Positions 1,506 through 15,223 are shown, counted from the first letter of the stretch. The stretch: DNA of 15,448 nucleotides from Prasinococcaceae sp. CCMP 1430 (GCA_013416795.1 RQSC01000071.1:11056-26503); one strand, 5' to 3'. Made by a program: numbers and translations. The notes: generated from the letters alone by a model not told the origin.

Positions 1506-3102
1506 CGCCGCCGCCGCCGCCGGCGCGGCGGGCGGCGGGGGCGTCCCCGTGGTGCGGCTGCACAACGCGGCCTTCCTGCTGAAGCACCCGTCGCTCGACG
1601 TGGTGTACGCCTCCACCGAGCGCATCGACCGCGAGGGCTCGGTGGTGGCCATGCGCATGGACGCCGAGAGCGGCGCGCTCACGCTGCTCAACAGCGTGGC
1701 GGCGCGCGGGCGCTCCACGTGCTACCTCAACCTCGACGCGGCGCGGGGCGTGCTCAACGCCGTCAATTACTGGGACGCGCGCCTCGCCGCGCTCGGCGTC
1801 GACGCGGCCACCGGCGCGCTCGAGGAGAACGCGCCGCGCTGCGTGCTGCAGCAGAAGCGCGGCGAGTACGCCGACGCGGCGCGCCCGGGGCGCGAGGAGC
1901 ACTGGGCGTACCGCCAGCGCTGGGCGCACACGCACTGCGCGGTGACGGAGCCCTACACGGGCCTGCCCAACCTCTTCGTGTGCGACCTCGGCGAGGACCA
2001 GGTGCTCCACTTCGTGCAGGGCGCGCGCGGCGGCCTCGCGCGCGTCGGCCACGCGCAGCTGCCGCGGGGCGTCGGCCCGCGCCACCTGGTGTTCCACCCG
2101 AGCCTGCGCGTCGCGTACGTGGTCAACGAGCTCGACTCGAGCGTGAGCGTGCTCGACGTGAGCGAGAGCGCGCTGCGCAGGGCGGCGGCCGCCGCCGCGG
2201 ACGTCGCGGACGCCGCCTGCGCGGACGGGGCCGGCGCGGAGGGGCAGGTCGTGGTGCTCGACTCGGACGAGAGCGACGGGGGCAGCAGCGGCAGCGAGGC
2301 GGGCGGCGCGGACGCGCCGGGTGGGGAGGCCGCGTGCGCGCTGTCGATCGCGCAAACGCTGAGCACGCTGCCCCCGGAGTGGCAGGGGCGCAGCTGCATC
2401 AAGAACGGCGTGTGGAAGGCCGCCAGCCACTGCTCGGAGATCAAGGTGCACCCGTCGGGGCGCTTCGTGTTCGTCGCCAACCGCGGCCACGACAGCCTGG
2501 CTGTCTTCGCGGTCGACCCCGGCACGGGCGGGCTGTCGCCGCCGGTGTTCACGCCGAGCGGAGGGGCGACGCCGCGCAACTTCTCGTTCTGCTGCGGCGG
2601 GCGCTTCGTCGTCGTTGGCAACCAGGACTCGAACTGCCTGTGCCTCTTCGAGGTGGACGAGCGCACCGGCGCGCTGGAGCTCGCGCACTCCATCGACTGC
2701 CCGTCGCCCAACTACGTGTACGCGGTGCCGCGCGCGAAGAGCGCTGACGCCAGGGCCGCGGCCGCCGCCGGCGCCGGCGAGCGCGCGGCGCTCGAGGAAG
2801 AGAGCTTCGAGTGCGGCGTCACGCTGCGCCGTGGGCTGAGCGAGGAGGAGGTCAAGCGCATCGAGGCGGACTGGACGGGCTGGTCGTATTCGACGCTCAG
2901 CGTGCTCGACCCGAAGACGTTCCCGTGGACGTACGGCGAGACCGAACAGTGCTACGTGACCAAGGGCGGCGCGAAGGTGACGCCCGACGGGTCGGACGAG
3001 GTCATTGTGCTCGAGGAGGGAGTGCTGGCAACTTTTCCCAAGGGCATGAGCTGCACGTGGGAGGTGCCCGACAGGATCGAGAAGAAGTTCATCTTTGAGT
3101 GA
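1506..3102 (+). CDS. Lactonase (6-phosphogluconolactonase/Pgl-CMLE-type 7-bladed beta-propeller) fused to a C-terminal cupin_3 (DUF861-like) domain; 5' end unresolved
   Basis: Lactonase motifs: HPSLDVVYASTE, GALTLLNS, HTHC, GPRHLVFHP, YVVNEL, EIKVHPSGRFVFVANRGHDS, PRNF. Cupin_3 motifs: FPWTYGETEQCY...VTPDG...FPKGMSCTWEV...KKFIFE*. Near-total GC3. No in-frame ATG between the stop at 1411-1413 and the conserved region. A pyrimidine tract ending in CAG at 1503-1505 is a plausible acceptor. Confidence 0.85.
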
Positions 3103-3230
3103 CGCGCCGGAGCGCCCCCAAGCGAACCAGATCGTGCGACGGGAGAGGGCGAGCGAGCGAGCCAGCGCATCGAGCGCGCTTGCGGTAACCCAGTCACGCT
3201 ATTACTCAAAAGGGGCGACCGCGCGCCGTC

Positions 3231-5096
3231 CTAGTCTATGAGGATTTCCGCGCCGTCGAGCGAGCGCTGCTGCTTGGAGGCCTTGGCTGTGGCCGAGCCG
3301 CCGACCGCGGACTCGTCCTCTCGCGCGCGCTTGCGCGCGCCGCCGCCGGCAACAGCGGCGGCGGGCCCGTCCTCCATGATGATCATGTCGTCGTCATCGC
3401 TCTCATCGACAGCGTCCCCATTCGCCACTTCGCCGCTCGCCGAGCCGCCGTTGGCGCCGGCGCCGTTGGCCTCAGGCACATGCCCCTTCAGGATGAAGCC
3501 ATCCGGATGCTTCTCCTCGTCCCAGTCGCCCTGATGTGTGACCACGAGGTTCAGAGTGACATCCTGCTGGTCATCTATGACGGAGAGCACCTCGCCGTCG
3601 CCCACCCCCCCGCCGGGCAGCTTCGACAGCGTCGTCGCGAGGTTCCGCTCGTATGCCGCGATCTCGTCGTCCTCGAGACCATCGTACGGCTCGTAGAACA
3701 CGCTGGCATTCGTTTGGACGCTCGGGTCGTTGAAGCCCATGCGCTTGCGCACGACCGCCTCCAGCAGCGTGCGCAGCGTAGTCCTCGTCGTGTCGATGGT
3801 CAGCTGAAGCTGTCCACCACCGCAGACGAAGCACCCCGGGCGCTGCGGGGGAGGGAGCGTCGGCATGATGATGGTCGTTCTGCCGGCGGCCTTCGAGGGG
3901 AACTCGCGCACGTAGGTCCACTTGAGCTTGTTGTGGTGACCACAGATGATCTTGATGGCTTCCAACGTGAGAAGGCCGCTCACCACGGCGTTGGTGGTGG
4001 CCACGGCGTGCACGATGTTGCCTGCGATGCCCTTGATATCGAACTTGCTCTGCTGTTCGATGCCGAAGCACGCCATGCGCAGATTTGCAGCGGATGCCAC
4101 GAAGTCGACCATCACGTCCTGCTCCTTGTCGAAGGCCAGCTCGCCGACCTCGGCGCGCATATCGGCCAGGGCCATGCACGAGGCGATGAAGACCCCCACG
4201 GACTCGTCTGTCGACAGCACCGAGTGCGCGTTGTTCTTGCCGAGCGCAGGCGGCTCGCCAGCCGCCGCAGCCTCGTCCATCGGCGTCGGGGCCTTGCGGC
4301 CGGCCTTTTTCCACAGGTCCTCCATCGCCACGAGGCGGCGCACGTCCGCAGAATACACGCGCGCGAAGATTCGCCTGCTGTAATCGAGCGCGCTCTCGCT
4401 CTCGGCGCGCAAGAAGAATGAGGCATCCTGAGCTTGGCCTTCGGGAGCCGCATTGCCGTCCGCGTCGCCCTGAGCGCCCTCCTCCTCGTCGAGCTCAGAC
4501 TGCTGGTTGGCCGCGCCGAAGAGCCGCGCGAAGAGCATCTCCTTGGCCCACACCACGCAGTGCACCGGCTTGTCCGGCGTGTTTCGGATGGTGCACACAG
4601 GGTACGTCTTCGGCGCCGGCTTCGGCTGGCACTCGAAGCACTCGCTCTCGCCGCGCTTGTGCGTCGTCACCTGGCCGAGGAAGCCGTTCGTGCCCGACTC
4701 GACCAGGGGAACCTCCGCCGCGAGGCACAGCCTGTTCACGTGTCTGCGCGCCTCCATGTTGTCGAGCCCGTTGAGAACCACATCGAAGCCCCTGACGAAA
4801 GACGCACCGAAGCGCTCCTCCTTGACGTTGCCGTGATGCGCCACGATCTTCGCGTTCGGGCGCATCGCGAGCGCCGCCTCGCGCGCGACAGTTGCCTTCG
4901 ACATGCCTACATGGTGGCGGCGGAAGAGGAATTGGCGGTTGAGGTTGGACGTCTCAATGGTGTCCAGATCAATCAGCTGGATGTCCTCGAAGCCCGTCAT
5001 CACCAGCGTCTTCAACAGCTCGCAGCCGATGCCGCCCGCCCCGACCATCAGCACGCGCGCCTTGGTGATCGCCGCGAGCTCCTCCGGCGTCGACAT
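3231..5096 (-). CDS. UBA2: SUMO-activating enzyme E1 subunit 2 (UBA2/SAE2), 621 aa, intronless
   Basis: Starts MSTPEELAAITKARVLMVGAGGIGCELLK (ATG at 5096). Contains DLDTIETSNLNRQFLFR, Zn-binding CFEC and CFVC, catalytic-Cys motif TYPVCTIRNTP, GIAGNIVHAVATTNA, a ubiquitin-fold region, and an acidic tail with basic RKRAR. Confidence 0.96.
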   Translation of the reverse strand: MSTPEELAAITKARVLMVGAGGIGCELLKTLVMTGFEDIQLIDLDTIETSNLNRQFLFRRHHVGMSKATVAREAALAMRPNAKIVAHHGNVKEERFGASFVRGFDVVLNGLDNMEARRHVNRLCLAAEVPLVESGTNGFLGQVTTHKRGESECFECQPKPAPKTYPVCTIRNTPDKPVHCVVWAKEMLFARLFGAANQQSELDEEEGAQGDADGNAAPEGQAQDASFFLRAESESALDYSRRIFARVYSADVRRLVAMEDLWKKAGRKAPTPMDEAAAAGEPPALGKNNAHSVLSTDESVGVFIASCMALADMRAEVGELAFDKEQDVMVDFVASAANLRMACFGIEQQSKFDIKGIAGNIVHAVATTNAVVSGLLTLEAIKIICGHHNKLKWTYVREFPSKAAGRTTIIMPTLPPPQRPGCFVCGGGQLQLTIDTTRTTLRTLLEAVVRKRMGFNDPSVQTNASVFYEPYDGLEDDEIAAYERNLATTLSKLPGGGVGDGEVLSVIDDQQDVTLNLVVTHQGDWDEEKHPDGFILKGHVPEANGAGANGGSASGEVANGDAVDESDDDDMIIMEDGPAAAVAGGGARKRAREDESAVGGSATAKASKQQRSLDGAEILID

Positions 5097-5191
5097 CCCG
5101 ACGGCAGCAACCCCCAAGAACTTCGTCCCTCCCTCCCTCGTTCCCTCCCTCCCTCCCCCNCTCGGCGCGCCACGCGCTGCAGCCGGCGCAC
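5097..5191. promoter_or_regulatory. 95-bp spacer and putative bidirectional promoter between UBA2 and the aspartic protease, with (CCCT)n blocks
   Basis: Divergent ATGs at 5096 (-) and 5192 (+). (CCCT)3 at 5127-5138 and 5143-5154. One ambiguous base (N) at 5160. Confidence 0.65.
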
Positions 5192-6304
5192 ATGGCAAAC
5201 ATGAAGACGTTCGCCGAGCTCCGCGCGGAGGGCCGCCGCACCCGCGGCGGCGGCCGCAAGAGCGGCGGCCGCAGGGGCAGCGGCCGCGGCCAGGGGGGCG
5301 GCGGTGGTCGCGGAGGCGGTGGTCGCGGGCGGGGCAAGCCCAGGGACCCGGCGCTGCCATTCGCAGGGTGCGGCCCGGCGCGGACGCTCGAGGCCCCGAT
5401 TGCATCTGCGATGCGCAGCGACGCAGGCGGCAGGGCGGCGGCAGCGGCGCGCCATGCCGCATTCGTTGCCGCGCAGCAGGACAAACTTGAGCGGGAGGCC
5501 GCGGCCGCGGTAGCGCGCAGGCCAGGCGCGGCGAGCGCGCCCATTCATATATCCGACTCCGACGGCGACGCTGACGACGCGGAGGTGGCACAGGGCATGC
5601 CTGCGGCGAAGCGCCAAAAACGAGCGAATCATCCGGCCGGTGGCCGAGCTTCTGGCGCTGGGCCGGACGTCGACGCGCGGCATCAGAAGCGTCCGCGAGC
5701 GGCCGCGTCGCCTGCGGCGACGCACAAGCCCACAACCTCGGCGGCAGAATATAATCCTTGGGGCGCATCGGGTTACGTCCCCGACAACCCCGACGTGCGC
5801 GACCTGCAGCTGTTCACAGACGAATGGTGTGACGTCTCGCTGTCTCCGGGCGAGCCATCGCTGAAGCTGCGGGCGTGCTTGGACACAGGAAATGGCGGCC
5901 CAACAGTGATATCGCGTGGCGCTGCACAGCGTCTGGGAATGCTCTCTGACGAGCCTCTCGGCTTCGTGACCATGCGAGGTGCGAACAGCTGCGCTCTCCA
6001 CTCCACTTAGGCTGATGGCGTGCGCCCCCCCTCCTCGCTCCCATTGCGCTTCGGCGCGGGAACTCCCGACCCTCTCCCCTCGCGACCGTGCTGACCCCCC
6101 GCCCGCCTCCCTCGGCGCGACACAGGCGTCGTCGAGGGCGCATCTGAGAGGTCAGCTTTGTACATGTTGACGTACACGCTGAAAGGGAAAAGTATCACCC
6201 GCAAGGCTTGCGTGGGCGGCAACGCAATGGGCTGCGAACTCCTCATCTCGCGCCGTGACATCCAGGACTTCGAGGCTGATGGGTACCGCCTCTCTGCCAA
6301 GTAG
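5192..6304 (+). CDS. Retropepsin-like aspartic protease with RGG-rich, SIM-like and NLS-bearing N-terminus; join(5192..5978,6126..6304), 321 aa
   Basis: LKLRACLDTGNGGPTVISRGAAQRLG has the catalytic DTG (5882-5890) in the LDTG..T.IS...A.RLG context of retropepsin-like families. Splicing AG|GTGCGA...GCTGAC...CAG|GC restores the frame: MRGVVEGASERSALYMLTYTLKGKSITRKACVGGNAMGCELLISRRDIQDFEADGYRLSAK*. Alternative start at the second ATG (5201). Confidence 0.75.
5979..6125 (+). other. Spliceosomal intron (147 bp) in the protease gene
   Basis: GTGCGA donor, GCTGAC branch point at 6090-6095, CAG acceptor. Removal bypasses the stop at 6008-6010 and completes the protease fold. Confidence 0.8.
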
Positions 6305-6386
6305 GTGGTCGCACAGCAGGAGCGACAGCAAGCGCTTGAGGCCGCCGGGCGAGGACGTGTGCGAATCTGAGCACTTTCCCATGTAC

Positions 6387-6391
6387 TGTAA
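6387..6391 (+). promoter_or_regulatory. Candidate TGTAA polyadenylation signal of the protease gene
   Basis: TGTAA about 80 nt after the stop in an AT-rich patch. UGUAA is the established chlorophyte poly(A) signal. Position is consistent but unverified. Confidence 0.45.
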
Positions 6392-6573
6392 TATTGTGAT
6401 AGTGTACACGCTCCGCCGCGCAGCCGCCGGGCACCATACTGCGCACGTCGCCGCCAGCGAGCCGCGACACTCGCGGGTGTCTTCCAGCCGCGTGCATCGG
6501 GCTGTGCCTTCGCCGCACGCGCGGCGCGTGGCGCTCCGTGCCCCTAGCCGGCCCTCGCTTGCTCCAGCACACG

Positions 6574-8508
6574 ATGGTGAAGCGTCGGCGCGACGAGGGT
6601 GGCGGCGATGACACGGCGAGTGCGCTCATGGACGATGTAGCCGAGTGGGTGCGCAGCCGGGGCGGGCACGTGCACGCCTCACTGTGCATCGGTGGCGACT
6701 CAGTGCGAGGCATACGCACGAAAGACGCGCACGTACGTCAGGGTGACGTGCTCCTGCGGGTGCCGCTCTCGTGCTGCCTGACGAGTGTGCGCGCTTGCGC
6801 CGAGCTCCACGCGAGTGCGCCCGCGGCGGCTGAGGCGCTGCTCGATGCAGCGAGCTCAGGTCAGCTCAGGCATGAGCTTGGCGACATTGCGCTTGCACTT
6901 GCTCTTTGCAGGGCCGTAGAGAGGGGAAGCTCATGCGAGACCCACATGCGACACCTGCTGCGCACCACGCCCGGCGCGCAAGAGATGCTCGAGGGCGATA
7001 CGGCGCTCCCCGCGCACGCGTGCGCACTGCAGGCGGGAGGTGGGCGGCAACACGCGAGCGCGCTGCTTGCGGAGTGGGAGGCACTGCTAAGCCCCTCGCC
7101 AGTGCACGCTCACATCACCGATGAGGTGGGAAAGCTGCTCGCGTCCCACAAGGCCGTCGACTCTGCGCTCGCACAGAGTGCGCCGCCGCTTCGTGATTTC
7201 CTGTGGGCAATGGCTGTCGTGTCCTCGCGCACGTTTACAGTTCCATTTGACGGCGTCGCGGCGGCCGGTGCGGGCGCGGGTGCTGAGGCAGCGCGCACTG
7301 GAGCGTATGGCGAGTCGTGCCTTGCGCTTGTACCGCTCATGGACATCCTGAATCACAAAAGGCCGCGCGAGACGGCCTGGAGGCTGGATGCCGACCGCAG
7401 TGCTGGCTTGGACGGAGCGATGGAAATGACTGCGCTGCAGCCATTTGCCGCGGGGATCGAGGTGCATGACAACTACGGCGCTGCAGGCAATGGCCCGCTG
7501 CTTGTGCGCTATGGCTTTACTGTGGCGCACAACTTCGAGCCTGACAACTCGTGCAACGATACATTGCCTTACGCACTGTGTGGTACGCGCGTCGAGCTGC
7601 GTGCGGGCCCACCAGCGTACAGCTTCGGGCCCCTAGCCAAGCTCGTCGACGCCGTGATGGGCGCCACCCGCAGGGGCGGCGAGCACGCGACGCGGCCGAT
7701 GGCCGCGACTTGCACTGCAGGGGAGTACGCAGCTGATGCTAGTGCAGAGGAGGACGAGCTGGACGACGAGGCGCTCGACGCACTCTACGGTGCAGACGAC
7801 AAGTGGGAGGAGAAGGCCAAAGCTCAGGAGGCCCAAGCAGAGGCCGAAGCGCAAGAGGAGGACGAGCTGGACGACGAGGCGCTCGACGCACTCTACGGTG
7901 CAGACGACAAGTTGGCTGGCGACGAGGGCGCCAGCGATACGAAAGTCCGGGGCGAGTGCGTGCGAGAGGAGGTCGCAGCGCTTAAGGAGGTTGCGCGTGC
8001 GCTTCACGCTACGGCGTGTGGCTACTACGCCGACGCACCGAAAGAGGACAGCCCAGGTGCGACCTCCTCGCCGCGAGAGTGCATGCGCACGCGCGCCCGG
8101 TTTCAACCCACGTGTAGCTGACGCATCCATTGTCCATGTGCGCTTGCGGACCCCGCAGGCTGCACGAGTGCGCTCCATGCCGACACTCTCCGCGTGTGCG
8201 AGCACCCACTCTTCGGCAAGTGTGCGAGGGCATCCATGGCGCGCGACGTGGCACTGAGTGAGGCAGCAACGCTCAGCGCATACGCGATCGCCGCGAACGC
8301 TCTCGCGCATGGGCTCGAAACAATCATGACCAGGAGCGCCTCCGCGAGGGATGGGAAGGCCGTCGTTGCGGACGGTATGGAAAGCGCTTGCAGCCGCGCA
8401 GAGGGGGCGGTCGCTGCCGTGGCACCCGAGGCCGCGCCATATTTCAAGCATGTGCCAGATGCCGTGCGCGCGTACATTCGAGTGCGTTCGCATCGCTTCG
8501 TGGAGTAA
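6574..8508 (+). CDS. SET-domain protein lysine methyltransferase (Rubisco LSMT/SETD3/SETD6-like); join(6574..8056,8159..8508), 610 aa
   Basis: WVRSRGG...RGIRT...GDVLLRVPLSCCLT; FLWAMAVVSSRTF; LVPLMDILNH; EVHDNYG...LLVRYGF. The intron joins the ORF ending at 8121 in frame with ORF 8194..8508. Confidence 0.88.
7746..7912 (+). repeat. Two identical 59-bp direct repeats (7746-7804, 7854-7912; period 108 bp) encoding EEDELDDEALDALYGADDK
   Basis: Base-by-base comparison of the two copies shows no mismatch. Confidence 0.95.
8057..8158 (+). other. Spliceosomal intron (102 bp) in the SET gene
   Basis: CAG|GTGCGA donor, GCTGAC at 8117-8122, CAG acceptor; phase 1, frame-restoring. Confidence 0.8.
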
Positions 8509-8642: not shown

Positions 8643-10968
8643 TCACCCGAGGCATGCCTGCGAGCGGAGGTCATGTGTGTCAGCCGACATATGAAATCAT
8701 CATAAATGCGAACGCGTTGGAACGCGCAGTCTGGCGCACGATGCACCAGCGCGCGCGTACCATCATGCTTGTCTCGATGTCCGTCCCCTCGGGCAGTACA
8801 GGCACGAGGCCCAAGTTGCGCACCTGCTCCTCGAGTGCGAGAATGCGCTTGAACATGCGAACCACCATGTCGTCCATCTTCTTGGTCATGTACTGGGCGT
8901 CCTCGACTGCGACCTCGCATGCGCTGATGGCCGAGCGCCCGCCCAAGGCCACCTTCTCGCTGCACACGTCCAGACGACGTTTAACTTCACGCACGGGCGC
9001 GCGCGCCGCCGCCAAAAGAGTCAGCCATGCCCACGCGAAAAGAGAGAGAGGCAATGTCTTTGAATCGAGATCTCCCAGGGGTGTAACGGCGGTCGCGGCA
9101 CATGTCGCCCCGGCACCTGACTAACCCTGGTGAATGTGATGCTCGCACGCGCGCGCGCGCGCACTCACCCTCCTTGATGCTCTCCTTGCGCTCCGCTGAG
9201 TTCATGGGGCGTTCGCTGCCATCGGGCATCTGCACGGCTGCAGAGGTGCTCAAAGTATCGATAAGCCGCTGCACGAGGTCTCGCCGACGGCTGTCCGCCG
9301 CGAGAGCGAGCTTTTGGAAGCCCTGCACGTGCGCGTGCAGCCAAAATAGAGCATGGGTGTAGGCATGTGCATGGTGGTGTCGGCACAAGCGTCGATGTCA
9401 GCACGCGCACGACTAAGGCGCCACCCGCGCATGTCGTTTGCCCTCGCAATCGCCTTAGCAGACACGTGCGCGCGCAGGCACGCACGCAGGCCGCGCGAAC
9501 GGACCTTCGCGTGCCCCCCCATCGGTCGCAATGATTGACCCTGAGCGGAGCCAGTCGTCAGCATCTGCATGGAGCCGTTTGTGCCCATGCCGCTGCTCCC
9601 GTCGGAACCATTCGACTTCATAGAATGATTCCTACTCAAGCTCCTGAACGTGTCGTTCAGTTGCTTGAGGTCTGTGACCTGCGCCTCGAGTGCAGCCTTA
9701 TCGGCCGCCGCTTGCGCGTTCGCCGCCGCCCCACGAGCCGCTGCTGCCTCGAGCGTGACAATCGATGCCTGAGCGGCCTTGAGGTCCTCGCGCGCGCGCG
9801 CGAGTTCAGCAATGTTGGCCTCAGCGGCTGCCATCTCCCCTGTACGCGCTTCCATCGCTGCCTTGGCGCCTTCTGCCGCCGCAGCGCTGGCCTCGGATCC
9901 GCCCGCTGAGGCGCGATCATACAGGTGCACAGCGAGCTCTAGCGAGACGGGCATACCCAGGCCATGCTCGGCCATGCCGCCAAGGTTGTGCAGCGCGTCG
10001 TGGGAGCCCTGCTCGGCCGCGCGTCGGAACCAGAGCTCGGCCGCGGCGTAGTCGCGGTTGGCGACCTTCATGTATGCGATGTTGTTCTGCGCGTGCATGT
10101 TGCCAGCTGCAGCAGCGCGCGCGTACAGTTCCTCCGCCTTGGTGGGGTCGGCGTCGACGCCGATTCCGTCCTCGTAGCAAATTCCCAGATTGTTGGCAGC
10201 GCTGCCGCTGCCGCCGCGTGCTGCGCGCCGGTACCACTCCACGGCCTTCGCTGGGTCCTGCGTGAGGCCGCCGCTGCCCTGAAAGTACATGCTGCCGAGG
10301 TTGTTCTGGGCCTTGGCGTGCCCCTTCTCGGCCGCCTCACGATAAAGCTGCACGGCGCGCACGGCGTTTTGCCTCACGCCCAAGCCTGTCTCATAGAGGT
10401 AGCCCAGAGCGGCTTTCGCATCCACCAGGCCCGCGTCGGCGGCCTTGCCGTAGTGCTTTGCTGCAGCAGCGTGATCGCGCGCGGCGGCGGGCGTCTCGCC
10501 GACTGTGGGTTCCCAACCGGCGGCATCGCCACCACCGGCCGCATCCTTGGCGCTGCGCGCGCCCGCATCCTCATGCGGTGCCGGCGTCGACGCATCAGCC
10601 TCGGGGGACTCCTCGAACATCTTGCCAAGGGCGAGATGCGCATCGGCGGATCCGCTCTCGGCTGCGCGCTCGAGCCACTTCCGTGCCGCGCGTAGATTGC
10701 GCGGCGGCAGCGCGTCTCCAGCATCGTCACCGCGCGCCTCGGGCCTCGCGCGCAGTGCGAGCGCCGCGAGGCGCACCATGGCCGCGACGTTACCCGTAGC
10801 CGCTGCGCGCTCGTACTTGGCCGCGGCCGCGGCCGCCGCCGCGGGCGCCGGAGGCGCCCCTTTCGCGGCGCCACCGATGGGCGCTCTGCTTGACGCGCCT
10901 GATGCGCCGGCATCGATGCCGAAGAGCATGCGGTCGCCCTCCAGCACGTACGCATCGCCCTGCGCCAT
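8643..10968 (-). CDS. Sel1-repeat protein with C-terminal coiled-coil region; complement(join(8643..8657,8761..8984,9169..9322,9505..10968)), 618 aa
   Basis: About 7 Sel1 repeats, e.g. AKAALGYLYETGLGVRQNAVRAVQLYREAAEKGHAKAQNNLGSMY, AANNLGICYEDGIGVDADPTKA and ALHNLGGMAEHGLG, followed by a heptad-like Ala/Glu region. The three introns (9323-9504, 8985-9168, 8658-8760) each have a GT donor and a GCTGAC branch point and keep the frame. The last exon is the least certain. Confidence 0.82.
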
Positions 10969-11245
10969 GGTTGCGCGCGCAAGCGCCCGCACGCGTGCCC
11001 CGCCCCACCCGGCCGCGTCCACCCTTAGGGCAGCCGCAGCGCCCCACACGCCCGAGCGCGTGACTCAACGCCCGCGCCAGCCCCAGCAGAAGCCCCCCCC
11101 CCCCCTCCCTCTCAATCCCACACCCTACCTCCTTCACCCGCGGTGGACCCGCACCCCAGACGCCTTCCCTACCCCCGCGATCGGCGCCCCTCCCCCCGCG
11201 CAGCTTTCCCTGCTCGCTGCGACCTCGCCGCCGCAGTGGCGTCGC

Positions 11246-11482: not shown

Positions 11483-11941
11483 TGCGCCTGATCCTGATTC
11501 CAAATGCCCACGAAAACCCGCGGGATGATTTGACATTTCGAGTCGAATTCCCGTGTTTTTTTTCTTTTTTTTCTGCCTCCCGTCCTCTCCTTCAAGAGGC
11601 TATGAAGTACGCGGCGGCTCGGTCGGATTTTGACCCCGCGAGCGGATGCGATTTGATGGCGGGCGGTTCCCCGACGCGCTCGCGCGCGCCGCCGGGCGGG
11701 CGTGCGGCGGCGGCCGGTGCGACCGGGCCGAAAGGCGGGGAGAGGCACAGCCAGCCTCCAACGTCCATCTCGTCACTTGTGCTTGCAGGGGCTCGAAAAG
11801 GCTGCGCGCGCCGCGCGCCGGTGCGCCGCGGCCGCCAACGGCTCGATTTGCGCCGCGGGCCTAGGCGCGCGGCGCCGCGCGGCGAGCGGCGCGGCGAAGG
11901 CGCCGCACGCGGAGCAGGCCTCGCAGGTCGCGCAGGCAGCG

Positions 11942-13711
11942 ATGGCATCGCCGGTCGCAGAGGCTGCGGCGACCGGGGACGCCGCCACCGCCGCCGTGGC
12001 AGGGAAGAAGAACAACAAGTCCTCGTTTGAGACGCGCCCGCGTGGCGCTGTGCGCCTCGTGCCGCCGCTGCTGCCCTCGATGCCTCCGACAGTCGCGTTC
12101 ACCGACCGCGTGCCCGCACACGCGCCCGCGGCGTACGCGCTCGACGAAGAGCCGCGCGTGTACGTGCGCTTGAGCGGCATCGCGAACAACGGCGTCAAGC
12201 ACGCCTTCCGCGATGCGGGCTTCCGCTGTACAGCCAAGCAGCACTTCAACGCGCTGTGGACCAGCGCGCTCGCGGGGGACGAGTTCTCCAGGCTCAGGCT
12301 CGACAGGTTCCAGAAAGTGAACCACTTTCCGGGCACGTGGGAGCTCGGGCGAAAGGACCGGCTGTACCGTAACGTCGCACGCATGCGGCGTCGCCAGGGC
12401 GCCGAACACGAGTTCGACATCATGCCGCGCTCGTTCATGTACCCGCGCGACGCAGCCGACTGGTCCGCCGACATCGCGAACCTGCAGGCTGACGGTGAAA
12501 ACCCGCTGTACATCGTCAAGCCGCCCTCCTCAAGCAGGGGCAGGGGCATTCGCGTCATCAAGGGCCCGAAGGACCTGCCGGGACTCGCCAAGAGCGCAGC
12601 CAGTGGGGGTAATGGAAAGGGGCGCGGGCGCGACGTGCTGGTGCAACGCTACCTGCGACGTCCCCACCTCATCAATGGCTACAAGTACGACCTGCGTGTG
12701 TACGTGCTGGTGACATCCTTTGACCCTTTGCGAGTGTACCTGTACGAGGACGGCCTCGTGCGTTTCGCGACGGAGAAGTACCGTACAGACGGCTCGAGCC
12801 TCAATAAACGAGCAATCCATCTGACCAACTACTCAATCAACAAAAACAAGGCGGGTTTCGTGGCTACCGCCACGGAAGAGGAGGACGGCGCGGGCTCCAA
12901 GTGGTCCATCGGCGCGCTGCGAAGGCACTTCAAAGAATCAGGGCTGGGCGACTTCGACGAGCTCGTGTGGCCGCAGGTGAAGGACCTCGCAATCAAGTGT
13001 ATGCTGGCGGTCGAGGCCGAGGTCAACACAAGAATCAATATGCACCTTGGAATTGACCGCAACGTCTGCTACGAACTGTATGGCTTCGACGTTGTGCTCG
13101 ATCGCGACCTGCGCGGCTGGGTGCTGGAAGCAAACACAGGTCCGGCGCTGCAGGCTCCCGGCGCCATCGATCGGAAGGTGAAGCACAGGATGATCAAAGA
13201 CATGATGCATCTAATTGGCTTCTCGCCGTACGACCGCGACGAGCTGCGCCGCGCGGAGGAGGCCAAGCGCGTGGAACGCCTCACGGGTCTTGGCGCCGCG
13301 TCGCGGCGCGCCGGCAGCGCCGGCGCGGGCGGGCACGTGACGGGCGGCAAGGGGCGGGCGAGCTCTGCGGTGGGTTCGAAGGGCGATTCGATCGAGAGGC
13401 GCACGGGTCGCAGCTGGAAGGAGGCGAGCGAAGTGACCTTCGACGGCCTGAGCCTGGCCGACATGCCTGCGTGCATTCTCGACACGGAGGCGGAAGCTGC
13501 GCGCTGTCCGACGAGCTGGAGCCGCATCTTTCCGCGCAAGGACACCGACGCGCGCTACCGAAAGCTCTTTGAGGCGCAGCGGTACTCAAACACCATCATT
13601 GCCAGGTGGCTCGCGTGGCCGGGTCGCTCCGAAGAGCTCCGGCGCGCGCGCGAAGACATGGACGCGCTGATGTCCAGCGTGGCCGCCGATGGCAAAATGA
13701 GAGGCGCGTGA
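11942..13711 (+). CDS. Tubulin-tyrosine-ligase-like protein, TTLL4/TTLL5-like tubulin polyglutamylase, 589 aa from ATG 11942 (longer spliced N-terminus possible)
   Basis: QKVNHFPGTWELGRKDRLYRN; YIVKPPSSSRGRGIRVI; VQRYLRRPHLINGYKYDLRVYVLVTSFDPLRVYLYEDGLVRFATEKY; HLTNYSINK; CYELYGFDVVLD...WVLEANTGPAL. These are ATP-grasp TTL family motifs. The subfamily is judged by recognition only. Confidence 0.92.
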   Translation: MASPVAEAAATGDAATAAVAGKKNNKSSFETRPRGAVRLVPPLLPSMPPTVAFTDRVPAHAPAAYALDEEPRVYVRLSGIANNGVKHAFRDAGFRCTAKQHFNALWTSALAGDEFSRLRLDRFQKVNHFPGTWELGRKDRLYRNVARMRRRQGAEHEFDIMPRSFMYPRDAADWSADIANLQADGENPLYIVKPPSSSRGRGIRVIKGPKDLPGLAKSAASGGNGKGRGRDVLVQRYLRRPHLINGYKYDLRVYVLVTSFDPLRVYLYEDGLVRFATEKYRTDGSSLNKRAIHLTNYSINKNKAGFVATATEEEDGAGSKWSIGALRRHFKESGLGDFDELVWPQVKDLAIKCMLAVEAEVNTRINMHLGIDRNVCYELYGFDVVLDRDLRGWVLEANTGPALQAPGAIDRKVKHRMIKDMMHLIGFSPYDRDELRRAEEAKRVERLTGLGAASRRAGSAGAGGHVTGGKGRASSAVGSKGDSIERRTGRSWKEASEVTFDGLSLADMPACILDTEAEAARCPTSWSRIFPRKDTDARYRKLFEAQRYSNTIIARWLAWPGRSEELRRAREDMDALMSSVAADGKMRGA

Positions 13712-13906: not shown

Positions 13907-15223
13907 CTACCAGCGCGTAGCGCCGGCCATGTTGTACCAATACCGCCGACCAGTCGAGGCGTCGACAGCAGGCAGCCACTCCGTCGCCGTCGGGGTCTGC
14001 TGCACTGATGGATGCATCTGCGCGCGCGTTGGCATCGGTGCCTGCGACTGCGCGCTGGCGCTCTTCCCGGCTGGCAGGTCCCAGCGCGTCTCCCCCGTGC
14101 GCGCGTTGGCAAAGTATGGCCGTGCAGTCGCAGCGTCGATCACTGCGTGCCACTGCGCATCATCGTGCGCGGCTGCGTCACTCTGGTCGATGGACTGAAA
14201 GCTGGCCTCCTCAGAGGTGGTCGGCTTCTGCTGCTGGGGGTCCAGCCTGGGCGTCGCCCCGTATCGAGGTGGCCCAAATAGGGTCGGGGCAGGCGTCGGC
14301 GCTGGCAGATGTGTCCGCCACGGTTGCCTCAGCACGCGCGAAGCCATGCGCTGGTCGGTCGGAACTGTCGCGCCACCAGCGTGCGTGTATGACTGTAGGG
14401 TGACATCGTACGCTGAGGTTGCCGACATGGGAGTCAGAGCGACGCCCATCGCGGTGTTGTTCCACCCACCGCCACCCACAGGCCCTTGCTGTACCTGAAC
14501 CGGCTGCTGCCGTTGCTGAAGTTGCGTTGTCATGCCGAAGGGGGTCTGCGCCGCCCGGGCGCCCGCCATCGCCGTGCGCGGCGCCATCATCTTCGCCACT
14601 GGCCCCGCACGCGCTGGCGATTGCGACGCAATTGTGCCTGGTGCAGGCGCGACGCCGACCGCGGGCGGGGGCGCGCCGTCGGTCGCGGGAGCCAGCGCAG
14701 GCGCCTCCGCGGGAGCGGCGGCGAGGACCTCTGGCAGCGGGTTGACAGCTGCAGCCTCCCTCCTTGCGGTTACCTGCTCCCTGAGGCGTTCGAGGTGGGC
14801 ATGCAAGGCGATGCACTCATGCGTAAGCTGCCTCTCTTCCTCCTTCAGCTCCTGCGCGCGCGAGCGGCAGCCCTCGCGCTGTGCTGCGAGCGCCTCGCCG
14901 CGTCCGAGTCCACACGCCGCGATGTGAGACGCAGCGTCCGGCGGCGCTGCAAAGTGGTACGTGCGTAGCGCTCGGAGCTCCACGCGCGCCGATCCACCGT
15001 CTGCCCTGTCGATGCTGAACACATCCTTGGGCGCCAGTGCCATGAGCTCCCTCGCGCGCGGGCTGTCCTCGCGCGCTCGCACCCCGCCGCCGGTCACGCG
15101 CACGCACACGCGTCGCTCGGGCGCCGCCCGCGCGGCACCGCGCACCCGCGCGCGCCGCGCCCCGGGGGAACCGCCGCCGTTCGAACCCGCTCTCGCCGCC
15201 GCCAAAATCGATTCCAATTGCAT
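13907..15223 (-). CDS. Protein with a coiled coil, Pro/Gln-rich linker and two C-terminal WW domains, 438 aa (alternative start at 15043)
   Basis: WW1 WHAVIDAATARPYFANARTGETRWDLP (14072-14152). WW2 WLPAVDASTGRRYWYNMAGATRW* (13910-13978). Coiled coil AQELKEEERQLTHECIALHAHLERLREQV. The ATG at 15223 is in ACCATG context next to an AT-rich promoter-like region. Confidence 0.8.
   Translation of the reverse strand: MQLESILAAARAGSNGGGSPGARRARVRGAARAAPERRVCVRVTGGGVRAREDSPRARELMALAPKDVFSIDRADGGSARVELRALRTYHFAAPPDAASHIAACGLGRGEALAAQREGCRSRAQELKEEERQLTHECIALHAHLERLREQVTARREAAAVNPLPEVLAAAPAEAPALAPATDGAPPPAVGVAPAPGTIASQSPARAGPVAKMMAPRTAMAGARAAQTPFGMTTQLQQRQQPVQVQQGPVGGGGWNNTAMGVALTPMSATSAYDVTLQSYTHAGGATVPTDQRMASRVLRQPWRTHLPAPTPAPTLFGPPRYGATPRLDPQQQKPTTSEEASFQSIDQSDAAAHDDAQWHAVIDAATARPYFANARTGETRWDLPAGKSASAQSQAPMPTRAQMHPSVQQTPTATEWLPAVDASTGRRYWYNMAGATRW

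Follow-up and report, generated by a model that had tools for sequence, protein, structure and literature searches.

The C-terminal part of a small protein encoded by the green alga Prasinoderma coloniale is predicted to fold as a retropepsin, and the protein belongs to an algal family in which this aspartic protease domain is joined to linear motifs predicted to bind SUMO and the Cdc48/p97 ATPase. The gene lies at 5192-6304 on the plus strand of a 15,448-nucleotide stretch of nuclear DNA, which we call the window (listed as Prasinococcaceae sp. CCMP 1430, GCA_013416795.1 RQSC01000071.1:11056-26503; G+C about 68%), where it stands head-to-head with UBA2, the gene for the large subunit of the SUMO E1 enzyme. 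A sequence-only reading of this DNA had proposed a SUMO-targeted, nucleic-acid-binding nuclear protease that is co-expressed with the SUMO pathway. Our analysis makes us lean, at somewhat better than an even chance, towards the view that the family consists of SUMO- and Cdc48-directed retropepsins, an aspartic-protease counterpart of the metalloprotease Wss1.

The C-terminal domain is a predicted retropepsin

The retropepsin-like domain comprises the C-terminal 115 or so residues and is encoded in two halves. The first half (5804-5978, plus strand), supported by AlphaFold, Foldseek and VIA comparisons and by invariant alignment columns, carries the catalytic D231-T-G-N at 5882-5893, and the position of the DTG itself (5882-5890) is the one given by the sequence-only reading. 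The second half lies in exon 2 (6126-6304), which encodes the G-V-V-E-G flap region, a G-C-E-L-L-I-S block and the C-terminal strand, followed by the stop codon.

Because Pfam and PDB searches with the single window protein gave nothing significant (the PDB sequence search returned no match), the fold was established through homologues and a structural model. An AlphaFold2 model of the protease domain, built on an alignment of 25 homologues, reached a predicted local distance difference test score (pLDDT) of 87.6 and a predicted template modelling score of 0.77. It consists of a single-lobe beta-barrel with a flap hairpin and a C-terminal helix and strand. All the PDB matches listed by Foldseek were of the retropepsin type, namely RloA, the RVP domain of Ddi1, the HIV, EIAV, FIV and foamy virus proteases, and DUF785; E values for RloA, Ddi1 and the viral enzymes were about 2e-5 to 2e-4. 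VIA Z scores, at 10-11 overall with HIV protease included, were 11.2 for DUF785 (2pma), 11.1 for EIAV protease, 10.7 for RloA and 10.6 for Ddi1. The nearest models in AFDB and the ESM Atlas formed a Chlorophyta cluster of the family's own (template modelling score, TM, 0.82), with RimB-like domains (TM 0.68-0.72), PEG10 and DDI1/2 also near; the matches in these two databases belonged mainly to clan AA (RimB-like, PEG10, DDI1/2, peptidase A2), together with the structurally related SpoIIGA, and PEG10 was the top Swiss-Prot structure match. The protease that had been suspected from the DTG is thus borne out by the model, which makes a retropepsin fold of the C-terminal domain nearly certain.

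Sequence profiles agree with this assignment. Among the relatives, 13 of 25 match Asp_protease_2 at E<=0.1, and P0053, from Prymnesium parvum, clears the gathering score of gag-asp_proteas (28.2 bits) with 32 bits. When PDB sequences were searched with the family profile, one family was matched, the Ddi1 RVP domain, marginally (E 0.03) and with the DTG motifs aligned. Invariant in the 25-homologue alignment are A-x-L-D-T/S-G-N, a Thr, an Ala and the G-x-V-x-G flap block, and the D, T/S and G are also invariant in a second alignment of 20 homologues. Judged by the confident fold of the model and this invariant D-T/S-G-N block, the DTG is not a chance tripeptide. The Asn that follows it, where retropepsins usually carry Ala, is invariant in the aligned family and can serve as its hallmark. 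Retropepsins act as homodimers; the domain ends right at its last strand, as the viral proteases do, and in the model this would be compatible with a terminal dimer sheet.

An uncharacterised family of algal proteases

An exhaustive HMMER search with residues 181-321 gave 36 representatives at the 50% clustering level, so that the family consists of about 36 clusters at 50% identity. Its members are mostly 200-600 residues long and carry the domain at the extreme C terminus, short fragments and a few very long proteins excepted; the aligned sequences are 28-66% identical. The named matches come from green algae and one haptophyte, with no land plant among them. Full-length soluble members have no Pfam family, and only two shorter relatives, P0029 and P0053, have clan-AA Pfam matches. 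These two are labelled as (predicted) aspartyl proteases, and otherwise the source names of the few named members are 'hypothetical' or 'uncharacterized'. Full-text literature searches gave no description of a retropepsin with SUMO-interacting motif (SIM), SHP, VCP-interacting motif (VIM) or other Cdc48-binding motifs, or of such an algal protease, and a review of Chlamydomonas proteases names chlapsin as the sole studied aspartic protease. The family is uncharacterised: its components, a clan-AA protease and linear motifs for SUMO and Cdc48, are known, and their combination is new.

Two architectures can be distinguished. The Prasinoderma protein belongs to a soluble subfamily. A second group (P0030, P0033, P0054, P0053) has an N-terminal hydrophobic anchor, a VIM, a PPxY motif and the protease, with no SIM; in P0030 and P0033 the VIM-like element reads Rx5AAx2R. 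By their sequence these proteins look like membrane-tethered, Cdc48-binding proteases. The trait that appears to unify the family is accordingly a retropepsin lobe with a predicted Cdc48/p97-binding motif, to which the soluble subfamily would add a SIM and a nucleic-acid module.

The closest relative of the Prasinoderma protein, P0003, comes from Tara and other marine metagenome contigs (L003/L004, G+C about 62%) and is 66% identical over the domain. It is known from contigs of about 1 kb, in which the open reading frame (ORF) runs upstream to the contig end and ends before any SIM region. We also observed that the third-ranked AFDB cluster match, A0A2B4S482, is an uncharacterised protein of 344 residues. 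Its C-terminal part (226-344) aligns with the model at TM 0.70 and a root-mean-square deviation of 2.6; with the same domain-at-C-terminus layout, it could be a family member outside the algae.

Candidate motifs for SUMO and Cdc48 in the N-terminal region

Motifs of the type V-I-D-L followed by acidic residues or Ser bind SUMO, and K-K/R-x-K/R tracts are nuclear localisation signals (NLSs). Relatives of the Prasinoderma protein carry a SIM of the PIAS type, V-I-D-L-[CS]-D-S-D-D-D. They also carry candidate Cdc48-binding elements, which are an addition to what the sequence-only reading had seen. Both the SHP box and the VIM are ligands of the Cdc48/p97 N domain (PMC5389986); the consensus of the former is given as h(x)1-2 F/W (x)0-1 GxGx2L (PMC5389986) or as FxGxGxxL (PMC5389986, PMC13078151, PMC12902296), and that of the latter as Rx5AAx2R (PMC5389986). 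The SHP boxes of the family read FKGSGFSL, FSGSGASL, FTGAGASL, FAGTGVRL, FEGRGVRL, FAGVGHRL and FAGTGNKL. Mamiellophyceae-like members, which have no SHP box, carry exact VIMs (RAELAAAAAKR, RAAEELAAARR, RADDAAAAAKR and REEMRKAAQRR); P0063, P0007, P0013 and P0025 are among the proteins matched. In P0022 a PUB domain was matched below threshold (Pfam E 0.007, 16.7 bits where the cut-off is 34.3); a PDB sequence search of that protein gave the match no support, and we keep it as a weak hint.

Enrichment was assessed on 27 N-terminal regions of the family, each shuffled in 1000 rounds. The strict SIM pattern occurs in 15 of the 27 (shuffle mean 0.26, maximum 3), the literature pattern of the SHP box in 7 (mean 0.09, maximum 2) and the VIM in 9 (mean 1.25, maximum 6). 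Wherever both members of a pair are found, SHP precedes SIM and VIM follows it, relaxed SHP matches being counted. Over the full-length homologues as a whole the succession of elements is fixed: N-terminal motif, nucleic-acid-binding module, SHP box, helix, SIM, VIM or basic tract, and the PPxY-like motif in front of the protease. The disordered regions can otherwise barely be aligned, with a mean column identity of 22% in the second alignment; because of this, and because of the enrichment over shuffled sequences, we regard the three as conserved motifs and not as products of chance. From the sequences, a SIM at the level of the family is highly probable, and Cdc48 binding at that level is likely, if slightly less so.

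The Prasinoderma protein retains the order of these elements, with SIM and SHP weakened. It opens with a conserved motif, M-x3-T-[FIL]-x-x-L-[KR] (5192-5233), common to P0011, P0084, P0093, P0010, P0021, P0026 and P0060. There follow in translation an RG/RGG-rich tract, R15-G48 (5234-5335), presumed to be a nucleic-acid-binding module, and then an SHP-box-like element, F57-A-G-C-G-P-A-R-T-L66 (5360-5389), at the position of the relatives' SHP boxes. A model of residues 74-321 comprises one helix (residues 78-108, 5423-5515), some 90 disordered residues and then the domain; the helix is taken from the AlphaFold model of the public gene product P0002 (its H5-35, pLDDT 83-89), and a helical segment is found at the same place in relatives. 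We tried this helix as a VIM and rejected it, since it reads R-x5-AA-x2-D and has lost the pivotal last Arg. Within the disordered stretch lie the SIM-like element P117-I-H-I-S-D-S-D-G-D-A-D-D129 (5540-5578, pLDDT about 50), and two basic, NLS-like tracts, PAAKRQKR (5600-5623), at the place of the VIM of Mamiellophyceae-type members, and HQKRPR (5681-5698). The RG-rich and basic tracts are those named in the sequence-only reading, whose statements at the level of sequence all hold, motif coordinates included. That reading had also named IHISDSDGDADD, at 5543-5578, as SIM-like; as to position this is upheld, most full-length relatives having a canonical SIM there, but the window's own copy fails the strict pattern. 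A second isolate, P0001, 98% identical, has an identical SIM-like element. Overall, judged from sequence, binding to SUMO and Cdc48 is a well-founded prediction for the family but only plausible for the Prasinoderma protein, and its nuclear targeting is suggested by the classical K-K/R-x-K/R pattern only.

The proposed binding of nucleic acid is helped by comparison with relatives. At the position of the RG tract, Trebouxiophyceae-type members have an RG repeat, P0021 and P0060 a CCHC knuckle (in P0021 a Pfam match to zf-CCHC, E 1.1e-7), and P0078 and P0028 a Cys-rich module of the CxC type. Such an exchange of the RGG tract for CCHC or Cys-rich modules would fit a nucleic-acid-binding role. 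Just before the domain is a further motif, N-P-W-G-A-S-G-Y-V-P (5753-5782), recognised in both alignments (A1 and A2), with the family consensus NP[FL][WF]xPPxYxP; its PPxY, of the type that binds WW domains, is present in 11 of 28 members, the Prasinoderma protein not among them. The aromatic-Pro pairs of this segment resemble the autoprocessing sites of retropepsins.

Expression, splicing and the start codon

Exon 1 (5192-5978) contains codons 1-262 and the first base of codon 263 and ends at a donor GT at 5979; the intron (5979-6125) is a phase 1, GT..AG intron of 147 nucleotides; and exon 2 (6126-6304) completes a product of 321 residues, the length predicted from the sequence alone. The public gene model, PRCOL_00001341 (PRCOL_00001341-RA, P0002), uses an identical junction, and contigs from two transcriptome-type runs of this alga, X1 and X2, contain it as well (joint 5976/6124, cut +2). 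Because a spliced form cannot derive from genomic DNA, the gene must be both expressed and spliced. The closest relative, P0003, is intronless at this position.

The public model begins at Met74 (5411), 73 residues later than the ATG at 5192. The upstream residues consist of the N-terminal motif, the RG repeat and then 'KP..P.F.G.G..L', and the same order is found at the N termini of homologues from Trebouxia (P0084, P0093) and of the algal sequences P0011, P0087, P0026, P0010 and P0021. From this comparison we conclude that the 73 residues are coding and that the ATG at 5192 is the true start. The conclusion rests on homology and not on reads, because the contigs do not map the 5' ends of the transcripts: Logan contigs end at 5341 for the protease gene and at 4963/5012 for UBA2, and the GC-rich, RGG-coding stretch 5159-5340 is uncovered. 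The gene model is thus corrected, the public version missing the N-terminal motif, the RGG tract and the SHP-like element.

Proximity to UBA2 probably reflects a compact genome

UBA2 occupies 3231-5096 on the minus strand (ATG at 5096, stop at 3231) as a single exon of 621 codons, supported by its ORF, by Pfam (ThiF E 1.6e-61, UAE_UbL E 1.3e-19, UBA_E1_SCCH E 3.6e-6) and by transcriptome contigs of X1 and X2. Its start codon is separated from that of the protease gene by 95 bp (5097-5191), the distance already noted in the sequence-only reading, which saw in it a possible sign of co-expression with the SUMO pathway while allowing that in a compact genome it might be coincidental. The second possibility now looks to be the right one. 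The published genome of P. coloniale is indeed compact (25.3 Mb, 7,139 genes, 69.8% GC; PMC7455551). A 95-bp divergent spacer is normal for this genome, because unrelated genes of the window sit as close as 128 bp (stop to stop, 3102 to 3231) and 233 bp (6304 to 6538). The adjacency is most likely a consequence of genome compaction; the two genes may share a promoter region, which is not evidence of a functional link. Contig depths of UBA2 and the protease gene are similar in X1 and X2 and provide no usable measure of co-expression. Within the spacer, tccctccc repeats make up a CT-rich tract (about 5126-5159), and position 5160 is an ambiguous N. This tract draws many unrelated metatranscriptome contigs (depth 137 in X3, 1200 in X4), which is not an expression signal.

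Orthologous loci argue in the same direction: UBA2 was absent beside the protease orthologue at all six loci examined, in three lineages, and we have rejected UBA2 synteny as a sign of a functional link. In Myrmecia bisecta and Trebouxia sp. (L001, L006) the orthologue adjoins Nuf2. A syntaxin gene is found directly upstream in Myrmecia; in Trebouxia it is one gene more distant. On three Mamiellophyceae-like contigs the orthologue follows a radical-SAM gene or, in L008, an unannotated ORF, and the sixth orthologue contig has a PHD/MS1-like neighbour. Downstream of the orthologue there is a convergent RecQ-family helicase gene in L002 (11254-15012, minus strand) and L007 (10749-13085, minus strand), and an unannotated ORF of 1240 residues in L008, probably a RecQ helicase gene too (3693-7415, minus strand). 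A Cdc48-like AAA ATPase is encoded about 4-6 kb upstream of the orthologue at the Mamiellophyceae-like loci. Such neighbours are suggestive of a DNA-repair context, which is unproven; the three loci share ancestry and amount to one observation.

The gene downstream of the protease gene (6538-8121, plus strand) has an ORF of about 527 residues without a Pfam match, in which signatures of the SET/Rubisco-LSMT type (..LMDILNH.., ..HDNYG.., ..LLVRYGF..) can be seen by eye. An acidic segment of 19 residues, EEDELDDEALDALYGADDK, occurs in it twice as an exact direct repeat, and the gene is expressed (X1 contig 6550-6800). An ORF at 1549-3102 (plus strand), whose stop is the one 128 bp from the UBA2 stop, encodes a lactonase 7-bladed propeller (E 1.1e-66) with a Cupin_3 match (E 3.1e-14). 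Further genes encode a GATA zinc-finger protein (64-954, sub-threshold), a Sel1-repeat protein (9250-11049, minus strand), a protein of the tubulin-tyrosine-ligase family (11702-13711) and a WW-domain protein (13907-15223, minus strand); none of these four is related to SUMO.

Relation to known proteases

The closest functional parallel is Wss1, which combines a WLM domain with SHP, VIM and SIM1/2, has both SUMO chains and Cdc48 as binding partners, and responds to single-stranded DNA by becoming active (PMC4559962); SPRTN also carries a SHP box (PMC5389986). At the level of the family, the predicted likeness to Wss1, and more loosely to SPRTN and GCNA/ACRC, consists of a small protease domain, a disordered region with SHP, VIM and SIM, and nucleic-acid binding. 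Because the SHP box and VIM are conserved in the family, the analogy with Wss1 becomes a testable architecture. It is an analogy and not membership: the window protein has no Pfam match to a WLM or SprT (HExxH) domain, Wss1 is a zinc metalloprotease whereas the algal enzyme is an unrelated aspartic retropepsin lobe that must dimerise, the order of domains is reversed, with the algal protease at the C terminus, and the Prasinoderma copy has a degenerate SHP and SIM and no VIM.

Ddi1/DDI2 (MEROPS A28) shares the cellular retropepsin fold (VIA Z about 10). The sequence-only reading had held that the protein lacks ubiquitin-like (UBL) and ubiquitin-associated (UBA) domains and does not look like canonical Ddi1, and our searches concur. 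No UBL or UBA was found in Pfam; the N terminus is an RG-rich, low-complexity tract (the models cover residues 74-321). Neither an HDD nor a C-terminal UBA or ubiquitin-interacting motif was found: a single helix of 31 residues is predicted about 90 residues upstream of the domain, and nothing follows the protease lobe. Targeting would depend on SIM and SHP/VIM and not on ubiquitin-binding modules. The active-site motif of Ddi1/DDI2 is DSGA/DTGA, and that of the algal family is DTGN. A more distant possibility, that the family represents highly diverged orthologues of Ddi1, can draw on the presence of Ddi1 structures among the top fold matches and on the Ddi1 RVP domain being the only PDB sequence family that the family profile reached. 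Yet identity to Ddi1 in structural alignments is 10-20%, no better than for viral proteases, the matches to RimB-like models (TM 0.68-0.72) extend further, and the UBL, HDD and UBA are all missing from a protein that stops where its protease domain stops; we consider such an orthology most improbable.

The best structural matches over the longest span are RimB-like/DUF785 (PF05618) domains and RloA (2pma Z 11.2, RloA Z 10.7, TM 0.68-0.72). They differ from the algal proteins in several ways: they are prokaryotic, they are often joined to RimK-type ATP-grasp ligases by fusion or encoded beside them, or else are periplasmic, and SUMO and Cdc48 motifs of the eukaryotic kind are missing. At the sequence level, no match to them was significant. 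The single-lobe fold is also that of retroviral and long terminal repeat (LTR) retrotransposon proteases and of PEG10/RTL1 (EIAV protease Z 11.1), and some algal members have an upstream CCHC knuckle, but the algal gene is a stand-alone host gene with an intron and conserved synteny and without a Gag capsid, reverse transcriptase or integrase.

Alternative explanations

Several observations count against the interpretation that we favour. The Prasinoderma protein misses the strict patterns of SIM, SHP and VIM, all three. Its SIM core, P-I-H-I, has two hydrophobic positions and not three, although the acidic tail SDSDGDADD is canonical, and the comparison with V-I-D-L-C-D-S-D-D-D was a residue-by-residue reading by eye, not an alignment block. 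The spacing of its SHP-like element is stretched, with four residues and not two between GxG and Leu, and it contains no VIM of the form Rx5AAx2R, having PAAKRQKR in its place. On its own it reaches only E 0.18-0.21 with Pfam Asp_protease_2 near the DTG (13 bits at E 0.18, cut-off 24.3). At the family level, the shuffle statistics overstate independence, the members being related. RGG tracts and zinc knuckles would suit RNA no less than DNA, and SHP, VIM and PUB motifs are also found in cofactors of Cdc48 that act in ER-associated degradation (ERAD) and elsewhere outside the nucleus. The absence of UBA2 from the orthologous loci removes a further argument. Finally, binding, cleavage, dimerisation and localisation are all predictions, function having been inferred and not shown.

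Some of these points would be explained if the proteins were Cdc48-associated retropepsins of general or RNA-linked quality control, engaged in ribosome or stress-granule clearance or in membrane protein turnover and with no real SUMO role; the acidic 'SIM' would then be a CK2-type acidic patch or a histone- or importin-binding element. RGG tracts and CCHC knuckles typically bind RNA, the anchored members with a VIM and no SIM (P0030, P0033, P0054, P0053) resemble Cdc48 recruiters of the ERAD type, and the SIM core of Prasinoderma is weak. Against this, an unspecific acidic patch is unlikely to account for the PIAS-type V-I-D-L with acidic residues or Ser that 15 of 27 members carry in a constant place, where 0.26 would be expected, and basic NLS-like tracts are present; we therefore regard a role confined to quality control without SUMO as rather unlikely. 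It is also conceivable, as has been argued for some functions of Ddi1, that the retropepsin lobe is only a dimerisation or peptide-binding module of a non-catalytic adaptor. The Asn that replaces the usual Ala after the DTG would suit such a role, and for a long time proteolysis by cellular retropepsins, Ddi1 among them, proved difficult to show (bioRxiv 10.1101/575860). However, the invariance of the catalytic Asp, the Thr/Ser, the Gly and the flap glycines at 28-66% identity is the pattern of a selected active site, and makes a non-catalytic protein improbable.

The sequence-only reading had itself raised the prospect of an unexpressed retroelement relic, and a remnant of a retrotransposon Gag-protease, or a recent domestication without conserved host function, might be suspected from the order of CCHC knuckle and protease in P0021 and P0060, which mimics the nucleocapsid-protease order of LTR elements, from PEG10, RTL1 and Ty3 among the fold matches, and from the members that match gag-asp_proteas. 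This has been largely refuted, and only a very slight chance is left to it: the gene is expressed and spliced; no ORF for reverse transcriptase, RNase H or integrase was identified nearby, the flanking genes being UBA2 and the SET-like host gene; synteny is kept within Trebouxiophyceae and within Mamiellophyceae-like genomes, with the orthologues amid host genes at six loci; and the closest fold neighbours are RimB/DUF785-like and not the Ty3 protease.

A proposed model for SUMO- and Cdc48-directed proteolysis

How might a SUMO- and Cdc48-directed retropepsin act? In the mechanism that we propose, the retropepsin lobe would homodimerise to form an active site with two Asp residues. The SHP and VIM motifs would attach the enzyme to the Cdc48/p97 N domain, the SIM would bring it to SUMOylated proteins, and the basic and RGG parts would bring it to the nucleus and to nucleic acid. 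A nuclear enzyme could thus read SUMO on a nucleic-acid-bound protein, recruit Cdc48 or be recruited by it, and cut the unfolded substrate. There is precedent for a retropepsin in this setting: Ddi1 takes part in the repair of DNA-protein crosslinks, its catalytic Asp is needed for crosslink tolerance when Wss1 is missing, and an interaction between Ddi1 and Cdc48 has been reported (bioRxiv 10.1101/575860). We put forward only tentatively that the proteins function as chromatin, DNA-protein crosslink or SUMO-conjugate proteases. The most specific form of the proposal, that in green and some other algae a homodimeric retropepsin brought by SIM and SHP/VIM cleaves SUMOylated nucleic-acid-bound proteins, for example DNA- or RNA-protein crosslinks held by Cdc48, is if anything a little more doubtful.

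The clearance of SUMO- or ubiquitin-marked proteins from DNA, by Wss1, SPRTN, GCNA, Ddi1 and FAM111A, is a current focus of genome-stability research. To our knowledge, none of the known DNA-clearing proteases combines a retropepsin with a SIM and Cdc48-binding motifs. If the specific proposal is true, the algal enzymes would be a third, independently evolved catalytic solution to the proteolysis of crosslinks or SUMO conjugates, and the first SUMO-directed aspartic protease. A family without Pfam annotation in the databases searched has now been assigned both a fold and a hypothesis. Should the predicted contacts hold, the same targeting kit would have been assembled convergently on an unrelated catalytic domain, the algal protein would offer a small and simple model enzyme for the hand-over of substrates from Cdc48 to a protease, and the family would fill a gap in the SUMO-dependent proteolysis of early-diverging green lineages.

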